From Salpingoeca rosetta (lineage: Eukaryota; Protista; Choanoflagellata), in assembly GCA_033442325.1 (NCBI GenBank), contig JAWQFM010000019.1, positions 405,099-469,098 on the forward strand: 64,000 nucleotides of DNA. Direction: 5' to 3'. Positions 30,578-36,139 of the stretch are shown piece after piece. The first letter of the stretch is position 1. Every line of letters starts with the position of its first letter. The notes beneath the pieces were generated by a model. That model ran no database searches. It had not been told where the DNA came from and saw nothing but the letters and a program-made list of their open reading frames with translations. Position numbers and translations under genes: made by a program.

Positions 30578-33500
30578 TTAGATGCACTTGCACACCTGAG
30601 AAAGGGTAATGAGCAACACACACAAGCGTGAGTCAGTCTGCAGGGCGTGAAGGGGAGAGACACAAGCAGTCGGCACATCGAAAAGGAGTAGCACCCATTC
30701 AACAGCACCACACAAGCGCAGCAGGCATCATCCCCACCTTCTTGCAGGCGTCCACAGACCCGTGCCAGAAGCGTTTTCCTTGAGATCTGCAATGCTTCTT
30801 GCACTGTCGTTTGGGCATGACATCATACTGCGTGGCGCAGCCACAGCGGCACACCTGCCACAAGCGGGAGTAGAGAGGCGTGTTGCAAGGGACAAAGGGT
30901 GTGTGAGCGGGCGGGAGGCAGTGCGGAACAGACAGGTGAAAGAGCTAGCATGCCTGCATGCACGCAGGTTGTCAGACGAAGACACAGGCAATCACCTGCC
31001 CTGGCAAGCGAGACTCACCCCGGTGCAGCCCTTGAAGCGAGGGTGATGCGTCCAGTCAAGGCCTATCGCGCCGCAATGCTGCTTGCATGTCCAGCGTGAC
31101 ATGAGGGAAGGCAGGCCACCGCACCCTTGTGAGGACGAGGTGACCACTGTGCTTGTGCTTGTCTCCGGCTGTGTTGACGTCATCTCTTCGGAAGATGAGG
31201 TCGTCGTGGTCGTGGTCGTGGTCGTGGCAATGGTGGCCGTGGTGGTAGTAGTAGTTGTTGTTGTGGTCGTTGTGGTTGTCGTGGTTGTGCCAGTTGTGGT
31301 TGTGGTTGTGGTTGTCGTGGTTGTCGTAGTTGTTGTGGTTGTGGTTGTTGTGGTTGTTGTGGTTGTGGTTGTGGTTGTGGTTGTAGGCGGAGTGGTACTT
31401 GTCGTCGTCGTCGTCGTCGTGGTCGTCGTAGTGGAATCAACCGTCGCACAGTGTCCAACAATTGCTCGGTCCAAGACATAGCCTCCAGCACTTGGCGAGT
31501 AGACCTTCGCCGATCCTGTGACGTCATCCACCAACACGGGCGTGGCACCTTGCTTGCGCACGTACGCGTACACAGAGCCTGAGCATCAACAAGGCAGTCA
31601 CAAGGCCAACGTGAGACACCTGTCGACAGCATCTGGGCTCAATCAAACACGCACAAGCAAACACGCACGCATGCACAGGCACAGAAGCAAACCACATTCA
31701 ATGCCATGTCCTCACACACGTACACACGCACATGCACACCAGTAAATTAAATGACCAACCAACACACCACGCACACATACAGACACTCATACGACACGAG
31801 TGGTTACCTCTGATGACTGGGCCAAAGTACCAGCCAAGACCGTCGGAGTAGGCGAGCATGTCACCGTTGGAGTAGACGGGGTAGTCCTGGAATGTGCTCG
31901 TGCGGGTGTACTCGCCGTTGATACGAGCAGCAAAGCCGGTGGCACCGCTAATGACTGGCGTGTCACACACATCTGGTACATGGTGTATGTAGTTGGTCGT
32001 GATGAGCTCGTCACGTCAATTGCAAACAGACAGGGGTTTGCGATTTCACACTTGACACACGCACACACACACACGCACACGCACACACACACACACACAC
32101 ACACAGCACAGCACAACACAACACAACACAACACAAGCATGCAGCTCACCTGCTGGCAATGAAACGACGACGGTGTAATAGTCAACGCGGGTGAAGCCGG
32201 GCCTGCCTGGAACGGTGAAACCGCGGACAGAGACGGTGTACGTGACGTCGTCAGCTGTGCTCAGCACGTCATCCTGTGGCATCTCCCAGACGAGCGCAGG
32301 GTCAAGCAGCGGCTGGAGCGGCAGCTGCTTGATGGCCAGACGCACCCCATCCCGATGGACAGACACGGTGGTGGAAGAAAAGTCTGCAAAGGGGATGGTG
32401 ATGGACCATCGGCGAGATGTCGGGAGCACCTGCTTGGGGAAGAAGCCTGGGGAAGGCCAGGCAACAAACTCGCGCGTGCTGCTGGCTGGGCCAAGCATGT
32501 GCTTGAAGAAGATGGCGTTGCTTGCCATGTGCGCGCCATTCTCGGGGACATCACCAACAGCAACACCGTGGAGGCGCGGCGAGAGGAACCAGCGGCGGTG
32601 GCCAACGCCGGTGTTGATCGCGCCGTAGTCGTCCATGAACGCATCCACTGCTGCCACGCCACCAATGCCAATGGCGATGTTGGACCACGCTGCTGCCTCA
32701 CCGGCCTCTGGTGAATGGCAGGCAAAGCCCTCGGTGTTGTAGTGGGCGGTGCGGCCTTCTGCGCTGAACATTAGGGCCGCTGCTTGCGGGTACACGCTGA
32801 GGTCCTCGCGCAGACTAAGTGGGAAGAGGCCAGCCTAGGCGGTGTCAGGTGTGAATACATCAGGGGTGAGTGGGTAAGATGGCTTGTTTGGCATGAAAGT
32901 GGCCAGCAAAATGAGCTAGGCAATGAGATGCGGATCAAGGGCGTCACACGCGCAAGCACGAGAGCACCTCCGAACGAACGTGAGGCTCAACACACCAGCT
33001 CGCGGTAAAAGTTGATGCGGTTGACGACGGCCTGTTGGTGCTGGAGTGAGGTGGTGCCGGCCTCACACTCCCGGACGTCGCCAGTCCACCCAAGACCTGG
33101 GACCGGTGTGTCCTTGAACTCCGTCTTGTAGAGCGCAATCACTTCATCGCGGTTGTACGGATCGACCAGGCTTGTTGCTGAACCTGTGAGCATGATGGTG
33201 TACATGTGAGTCGGGACTGTGGCATCATGCCAGGTGGTGATAGCGTTCAGTGTGGGCAAGCCCCCTTGACAGGCAGCAGAGTAAGTAACATGACACACAT
33301 ACACACACGCACATGCACAGACACACACGTACATACACATACACAAACACATACACAAACACAGACACACAAGTACGCTCACACGCACATACATACACAC
33401 ATACACGCACGCACATACACGCACATACACACACACACACATACACATACACACACATACACACATGAACCACCAACGCTTGCTGTTCCGTACGTCTGGC

Positions 33501-33779
33501 AATCTGCTGGACAGCATCGAAACTTGCAATGTCCTGGTCAAGCGACTGAACATCTACTGCGGGGCTTGGCAGCAACACTGTTACAGGCGAGTTAAAAGCG
33601 CAATCAGCATGAGCGTGTCGGAGCGCCTGGGGGCTCACGAGAGAGAACAAGCGCACACCGACCGCGGCAGAGTGAACGTGTGAACAAAGGGTTGGCCCAC
33701 CTTGTGCATTCGCTACCGCCACTGAGCCACACAGGACGAGCAGTGTCAGCAGCAGCTCGGTGGCTGCTGTCATCGTCAT
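30578..33779 (-). CDS. Secreted protein: signal peptide, bacterial-type CAP/SCP domain with C-terminal extension, small Cys-bracketed module, poly-Thr stalk, two 6-Cys defensin-like repeats; ~8 exons
   Basis: MTMTAATELLLTLLVLCGSVAVANAQ; WTGDVRECEAGTTS..VVNRINFYREL|AGLFPLSLREDLSVYPQAAALMFSA..TAHY..SNIAIG..FMDDYGAINTGVGHRRWFLSP..FVAWPSPGFFP..RWS..ADFS. Last exons are 31579-31019, 30854-30738 and 30595-30578 (VCKCI*). Confidence 0.8.
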
Positions 33780-34658: not shown

Positions 34659-36139
34659 ATGAGCTTTGCTTACGAGATCAACGACAAAGTGTTTGCCGAG
34701 TATGGCGGACACCTCTACGAAGCCAAGGTATGTTGTGCGGTGTGGAAGGGGGAGGGGAAAGGAAAAGGGTGGCTCAGAGCGTGCGCGCGTGTGCGTGTGC
34801 GTGTGCGTGTGCGTGTGCGTGTGCGTGTGCGCGTGCGTGTGCGTGTGCGCGTGCGTGTGCGTGTGTGTGTGCGCGTGCGTGTGCGTGTGTGCGTGCGTGT
34901 GCTTGTGTGCTTGTGTGCGCACGCATGCTGTGTGTGTGTGCTTTTGTTTGTGTGTGCGTGCGCGCGTGTGTGTGATGACGGCTCATGGCCACGCTCACTC
35001 CCTCAACCTCACTCGCGATGTCTCCCCTGTTCCTTTCATCAGTGCGTGAAGCGCAGGATGAAGGACGGCATCCCACAGTATTACCTCAAGTACTTTGGAT
35101 TTGGCAAGCGGTGAGCCCATGTGACACGATGCTCATTGTTGAATGGAGTTGCGGCTTTCGTTCTTGCTTGATCCAGTTATACTCTTCACCGCTTACACGA
35201 GGCGCATGCACACACGCGCGCATGCACGAATGGTGCCCAAGCAGCAACAACCGGTGGCAGCCGGAGAAGGATCTGTATCCTTACAATGAGGAGAACAGAG
35301 AGGTGATGCTTGACAGAAGGTGAGCGACCGCCCCAAACAAGACGTCATTGTTTGTGTCGTGTGTGTGTGCAGGTGTGGGTGCGCGTGTGCTCGGGTGCGT
35401 GTGTGCGTGTATGCGTGTGTGTGTGTGTGTAGGTGTATGCGTCCAGGGTTCAGCTTTACCCTCTATGCAAGGATCGTGCTTGAAGAGCGCGTGTGCACTG
35501 TCGCTGTCACGTACACACGCACCCGAGCACACGCATGCTCACCTCCTTTCATGTTGATTGTCACAGAGAGGCTGCACGTCGACTTGAAGAGGAGCAGAAA
35601 CAGGCAAAGGCGCGAAAGCGTGCATCGACCTCAAGCGCAAGCCCATCCGGCGGTGCACAACGTTCGTACTCATGACTGCTGCTTGGTAGTTAGTCGGTGG
35701 GCTGGAAGTGTGAAGCAGCGTGGTTNNNNNNNNNNNNNNNNNNNNNNNNNNNNNNNNNNNNNNNNNNNNNNNNNNNNNNNNNNNNNNNNNNNNNNNNNNN
35801 NNNNNNNNNNNNNNNNNNNNNNNNNAATCGTCGTTGGGCGTGCGCGGTGGTGCATCGACTGCCAAGAGTACCGCAGGCTCACTCACCATCTCAAACGTCA
35901 TTAAATCGTGCGTGGACACGTTTGTATATGCTTCTGAGGCGGTGCTGTGTGTCCGTGTGTGTTGAAGAACGATGCTTCTTCCATGCAATGCGTGCCTTTG
36001 TTTCCACCATACTCACGCGTGCGTGTGCGCATATTTACATGTGTGATGTGCACAGGTCGCTGTCCGTGCCCCCGTCCTTGTCCCGTAATCTCGTCCTTCA
36101 ACACCTTCGACACGCAGATCGCATGGTGTGTGTGCGTGC

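Follow-up and report, generated by a model that had tools for sequence, protein, structure and literature searches.

A choanoflagellate gene for a secreted, stalked protein with a bacterial-type CAP region and two tandem C-terminal modules that fit the CSab cystine framework

Organization of the seven-exon gene

The window analyzed here, a 64-kb stretch of the Salpingoeca rosetta genome, contains on the minus strand a gene of seven exons (A to G) with a coding total of 1812 nt, that is, 604 codons including the stop (protein of ~603 aa). All six introns are of the GT-AG type, and their phases are consistent. The predicted protein consists, in this order, of a signal peptide, a bacterial-type CAP region, an unknown domain of ~100 aa, a Thr-rich stalk of 78 residues, and two small modules with six cysteines each. 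The features are as follows.

33701–33779, minus strand: exon A, the ATG and a 26-residue signal peptide, a hydrophobic leader ending in VAVANAQ; phase-1 donor CAAG/GTGGGC
32996–33183, minus strand: exon B, start of the bacterial-type CAP region, from the alignment with P0004; phase-0 donor CTG/GTGTGT
32150–32834, minus strand: exon C, remaining CAP region and C-terminal beta-rich domain, from the PF00188 relatives; phase-1 donor CAG/GTGAGC
31808–31972, minus strand: exon D, first half of the Cys-bounded ~100-aa domain; phase 1 at both ends, frame kept (G+AT)
31019–31578, minus strand: exon E, second half of that domain, the Thr-rich stalk, a Ser/Thr linker and module 1 from C1 to C4, from translation
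31199–31432, minus strand: the Thr-rich (mucin-like) stalk within exon E, from translation
31019–31129, minus strand: module 1, C1 to C4 (QGC...CKQHC...GCTG), from translation
30855–31018, minus strand: intron E/F, 164 nt, GTGAGT...CAG, phase 0, with stops in all three frames
30738–30854, minus strand: exon F, symmetric (0-0), 39 codons, closing module 1 with VCRC and carrying C1 to C4 of module 2; GC3 0.69
30596–30737, minus strand: intron F/G, 142 nt, GTGGGG...CAG, phase 0, from sequence reading
30578–30595, minus strand: coding part of exon G, VCKCI and the stop (end of module 2), from sequence reading

The initial annotation had placed the two modules in the context of a secreted CAP protein with a Thr-rich stalk, and this context is borne out: the signal-peptide exon was found, and bacterial PF00188 proteins align collinearly with exons B and C. 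At the A/B junction, a Gly codon is assembled from the last base of exon A (G) and the GT that opens exon B. Exon B aligns with residues 55–111 of P0004, a 361-aa protein carrying PF00188 (35% identity, E = 4e-11), and exon C aligns, collinearly with exon B, with residues 129–318 of the same protein (43% identity, E = 2e-45). The gap between the two alignments on P0004 is filled by the first 16 residues of exon C, and the collinearity of the two exons thus serves as a check of the B/C junction. A word search identified 253 relatives of exon C, nearly all of them PF00188/'YkwD' proteins of ~355–375 aa, with E values down to 1e-36; the few relatives with a named source come from Chloroflexota, Anaerolineae, and Caldilineaceae, with identities of 35–43%. 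When the exon pieces were scanned directly with Pfam and NCBIfam, no CAP call was obtained, nor did the genome scan produce one, so that the CAP label rests on these homologs; by these alignments, the N-terminal region is homologous to the CAP superfamily (PF00188).

The bacterial CAP proteins terminate at the position where exon C terminates. Judging from this comparison, exons A to C (32150–33779, minus strand) are a complete bacterial-type CAP/YkwD-like protein and the 3' remainder of the gene is an addition; because the bacterial proteins end at this point, exons A to C look like a transferred gene that later gained introns and new 3' exons. The best match of exon C, P0003, is a Logan-derived sequence of 206 aa (47% identity, E = 9e-49) that has no Pfam annotation and starts and ends close to the limits of exon C. 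P0003 looks like the same exon of an orthologous, intron-bearing gene in another eukaryote. Neither the CAP exon nor exon D has a second copy in the genome.

The ~100-aa domain downstream of the CAP region (31433–31972, minus strand), which is encoded by exon D and the start of exon E, is bounded by two cysteines and contains the motif G-E-Y...Y-P-V-Y-S-N-G-D...G-W-Y-F-G-P; Pfam, NCBIfam, and PDB contain no match to it. The Thr-rich stalk that follows may be O-glycosylated. Introns of the gene (33300–33470, 32040–32140) are full of imperfect TG/CA microsatellites that give rise to long Cys/Val-rich pseudo-ORFs, and because of such microsatellites, searches with Cys-codon patterns are swamped genome-wide. 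An N run (assembly gap) at ~35720–35830 accounts for the X-runs in several of the listed ORFs.

Two six-cysteine modules interrupted at the same place

The initial annotation had joined three terminal exons into two six-cysteine modules, and the reading of the minus strand gives exactly that. The exons 31578–31019, 30854–30738, and 30595–30578, spliced by two canonical GT-AG phase-0 introns, encode two modules of ~40 aa each, with the spacing C-x11-C-x3-C-x15-C-x3-C-x-C in module 1 and C-x11-C-x3-C-x14-C-x3-C-x-C in module 2, as read exon by exon. Exon E ends at 31019 with F-K-G-C-T-G (GCTG), immediately before the GTGAGT donor; the acceptor AG of intron E/F lies at 30856–30855, and exon F opens with VCRC, continues with GC...CKKHC...ACKK, and is followed by the GTGGGG donor. 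The acceptor AG of intron F/G lies at 30597–30596, and exon G reads VCKCI and a stop, with TAA and TGA next in frame, so that three in-frame stops close the gene. Both introns are in phase 0, two codons past C4. Both modules are cationic, as had been stated, with a net charge, by hand count, of ~+4 in module 1 and ~+8 in module 2.

Could such a pair have arisen by chance, given the many cysteine codons that a TG-rich genome offers? When the window is translated in six frames, the C1–C4 spacing alone occurs at the chance level (5 observed compared to 5.2 in shuffles), and each of two Cys-codon patterns floods the genome with ~11,000 matches that derive from TG and TGC repeats. However, the composite signature, defined as C1–C4, two codons, GT, 80–400 nt, AG, and V-C-[KR]-C, occurs in the window only at this locus and in none of the 40 Markov-1 controls. 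With both strands of the 64 kb counted, V-C-[KR]-C directly behind an acceptor AG is found only twice, each time at this locus, against 0.125 expected. Furthermore, the alignment of the two C1–C4 pieces, with E = 6e-5, spans 27 aa at 33% identity and has G-C, M, C-K-x-H-C, G, and H in common, and the modules are encoded in frame by the last exons of a gene with seven exons. A chance origin is effectively refuted by these observations and appears extremely improbable; on this evidence, the module pair is non-random and duplicated.

The exon duplication that had been proposed is upheld by the identical place and phase of the two introns together with the module-to-module similarity. In this event, a stretch of the gene extending from the module start, across a pre-existing phase-0 intron, to just past the CxC would have been duplicated in tandem. 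Such a history would explain the identical location of the two introns as well as the hybrid nature of exon F, in which the end of module 1 is joined to the first part of module 2. The two module introns do not align to each other, which implies that the duplication is old, and also that it is not datable from the introns. Despite this divergence of the introns, every cysteine and the CK[QK]HC core are kept in both copies, which argues for selection on both.

A different 3' end of the gene has to be considered as well. Intron E/F could be retained, with a stop at 30992 (GCTG followed by 9 residues), or exon F could be left out of transcripts or represent a duplicate in decay; one or both modules would then never be complete. 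The splicing is deduced from the sequence, the ORF that runs into intron E/F indeed closes after 9 codons, and the terminal exons are present in no protein of a library of 1.84 billion representatives; moreover, because exon F is symmetric, its skipping would keep the frame and yield a one-module protein. Against such an ending, the two junctions have canonical signals, bring the reading frame exactly back into register, and twice yield a full six-cysteine framework; the GC3 of exon F is high, like that of the other exons; and all cysteines and CK[QK]HC have been retained while the introns diverged, which points to selection on both copies. We consider an altered 3' end improbable. The terminal exons are real and coding, to judge by junctions, frame, and composition, and complete the seven exons from which a secreted protein would be made; the gene model appears sound, and the modelled junctions are presumably spliced in vivo.

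Relationship of the modules to CSab peptides

The consensus framework of CSab peptides is Cys1...Cys2X3Cys3...Cys4...Cys5X1Cys6, and its CX3C and CXC motifs are described as decisive for the fold (PMC5234102). Both modules, as read exon by exon, fit this framework, and their n-loop of 11 residues is inside the range of 4–16 in insect defensins (PMC5116183). The canonical gamma-core, GXC at Cys4 (PMC5116183), is absent, with K-G-C preceding this position in module 1 and D-A-C in module 2.

AlphaFold2 and the sequence searches were run on single-exon pieces, each of which lacks the CxC. No CSab protein or profile was matched significantly: hmmscan of the pieces against Pfam, with E values up to 10, detected no defensin or toxin family, and the six-frame genome scans with PF01097 (Defensin_2) and PF14866 (Scorpion_toxin_alpha-beta) did not match the locus. 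The search of PDB sequences with exon F yielded two matches, both to the CSab peptide Hge-scorpine and both over GC...CK[KR]HC, the better one with E = 0.52. Thus, the initial description of the modules as CSab-defensin-like stands as far as the cystine framework is concerned, which equals the published consensus, and finds no counterpart in a significant sequence or profile match or in a gamma-core.

The structural check suggested along with that description gave a similarly divided result. For the module-1 piece, modelled with module 2 as the alignment, AlphaFold2 predicts a helix at residues 12–21 that covers CKQHC, followed by strands at 25–28 and 33–36, with C4 within the second strand (mean pLDDT 70.6); for the exon F piece, a helix at residues 15–25 covers CKKHC (mean pLDDT 64). 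At the CxxxC helices of both pieces, the pLDDT is moderate (~70–80). Foldseek with the module-1 piece lists CSab structures in ~30 of the 47 rows, including scyllatoxin-based CD4 mimics, tamapin, OSK1, kaliotoxin, BmBKTx1, and plant defensins; the TM score on the target is at most 0.6, no match is significant, and the 3Di+AA score may merely reward aligned cysteines. Hence the CxxxC in a helix, the succeeding strands in module 1, and the weak CSab matches agree with the proposal, whereas none of the matches to these partial modules reaches significance. In Foldseek, the exon F model retrieved only Ras-like beta-alpha-beta fragments, a meaningless result, exon F not being a structural unit.

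In CSab peptides, the strand with Cys5-X-Cys6 is stapled to the helix, and the disulfide pairing is C1–C4, C2–C5, and C3–C6. If the modules share this fold, C2-x3-C3 would lie on a short helix that is stapled by disulfides to a C-terminal strand carrying C5-x-C6; a third bridge would connect C1 and C4, and the long C3–C4 segment would add an extra hairpin. Such a fold, with this putative disulfide pairing, appears the most likely one.

The modules share with CSab defensins and short scorpion toxins (plectasin, tick and mollusc defensins, scorpine, tamapin) the six-cysteine framework, the cationic character, the CxxxC in a helix (here a predicted one), and V-C-[KR]-C as the last motif. Unlike these peptides, the modules have no GXC gamma-core, and in CSab peptides, the C3–C4 gap is typically shorter than the 14–15 residues seen here and the C4–C5 gap typically longer than 3. 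Furthermore, the modules are two fused copies at the C terminus of a ~600-aa protein and not the product of a small signal-pro-peptide precursor. The layout of a defensin-type precursor, with a signal peptide, an optional propeptide, and a single mature peptide of <100 aa, is accordingly not found in this C-terminal domain pair of the ~603-aa protein, and no dibasic or other processing site is visible before or between the modules. The avian AvBD11, a double beta-defensin, likewise has a unit of defensin size duplicated in tandem in a single polypeptide (PMC9138766); AvBD11, however, is a trans-defensin and a small secreted peptide, whereas the modules described here are part of a mucin-like protein.

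An alternative is that the modules adopt another small disulfide-rich fold, such as a ShKT-like helical knot or a new fold, so that the CSab-like spacing is coincidental, and that the modules, as the ends of a mucin-like matrix protein, have a structural, cross-linking, or oligomerizing role. A C4-x3-C5 spacing is typical of the ends of ShKT domains, and the CRISP architecture combines a CAP/PR-1 domain with a C-terminal Cys-rich, toxin-like domain, an ShK-like regulator of ion channels. Like the protein described here, CRISPs thus carry a small disulfide-rich domain behind a secreted domain of the CAP family, but the CAP region here is of the bacterial YkwD type, the ~100-aa domain and the 78-residue Thr stalk intervene, and the modules end with CxC and have no ShK profile match. 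The lack of any defensin profile match at the locus and the uniform weakness of the structural matches are in line with a different fold. In addition, the fold of the superfamily is not fixed, as defensin-like peptides with an altered cystine framework are known to change fold (PMC5234102).

On the other side, each of the two copies has both of the invariant motifs of CSab peptides. As to ShKT specifically, the ending of the modules is C-x3-C-x-C as opposed to C-x3-C-x2-C, the helix predicted by AlphaFold2 in module 1 leads into strands rather than into more helices, and the PF01549 profile matches a different contig of the genome (C12, E = 1e-5) and not this locus. Readings of the modules as EGF, Kazal, knottin, or beta-defensin domains were rejected because of the misfit of the spacing, and Pfam found no such family. 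We regard another disulfide-rich fold as rather unlikely. Altogether, CSab (cis-defensin) domains of a stalked, secreted, seven-exon protein are the best available explanation of the modules, and our confidence in this assignment is evenly balanced.

The matches to PF01549 on contig C12 (G000:C12:1193939-1194398, minus strand) are themselves two adjacent, true ShK domains, with E values of 1e-5 and 0.01, both over the cut-off.

Search for relatives of the modules

A two-piece profile of the modules, compared to the 1.84 billion representative proteins, retrieved no relative, and accordingly, these representatives provide no conservation or covariation support for the modules. Each module scores 83–87 bits against its own profile; given these self-scores and the lack of a library match, the exons are absent from all proteins of the library, and this end of the gene is apparently missing from the public protein sets on which the library draws. 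Two profile matches, P0001 and P0002, were discarded as spurious repeat proteins that sum copies of a word similar to KHCGSIGLEH or KVHCTSVG. These proteins reach E values of 1e-7 to 1e-13 against the 37-position profile by adding up 9–18 copies of a partial match of 11–15 residues, so multi-stretch matches of short Cys-rich profiles call for caution.

Within the genome, no paralogs of the modules were detected by tblastn or by the profile, the four weak profile matches being TG-repeat junk. The codon pattern for CK[QK]HC occurs at 29 genome sites, and the module context is present in two of these, both at this locus. A word search with the 80-aa tail among proteins of 44–140 aa yielded no candidates, and the ESM Atlas contained no usable match to exon F.

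Possible function and implications

Because no processing site precedes the modules, they probably remain part of the protein, with the stalk projecting them outward. As their charge is strongly positive, they may bind anionic surfaces, for instance those of bacterial envelopes or of the extracellular matrix. The modules could thus act as a tethered, cationic binding head, possibly an antibacterial one.

CSab defensins are known mainly from plants, fungi, and invertebrates, more recently from bacteria, and, in silico, from ciliates (PMC5234102, PMC11561630, PMC10040121), and our literature searches found no report of a CSab defensin in choanoflagellates. Tentatively, and with somewhat less confidence than in the assignment itself, the modules may be genuine CSab domains, the first in a choanoflagellate, arranged in tandem and mounted on a stalk in a large secreted protein that is built on a bacterial-type CAP gene. 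Should the fold be different, the locus would still be a clear case of a bacterial-type CAP gene that was extended by eukaryotic exons and underwent an internal exon duplication. If the modules are indeed CSab domains, they would be a natural case of this scaffold being used in tethered form, as a domain, and not as a free peptide, and the fold would be present in the closest unicellular relatives of animals. Such a finding, in a bacteria-eating relative of animals, would bear on the origin of animal defensins: it would favor vertical descent of the defensin scaffold that is common to fungi and invertebrates and would point to an ancestral role in the handling of bacteria.
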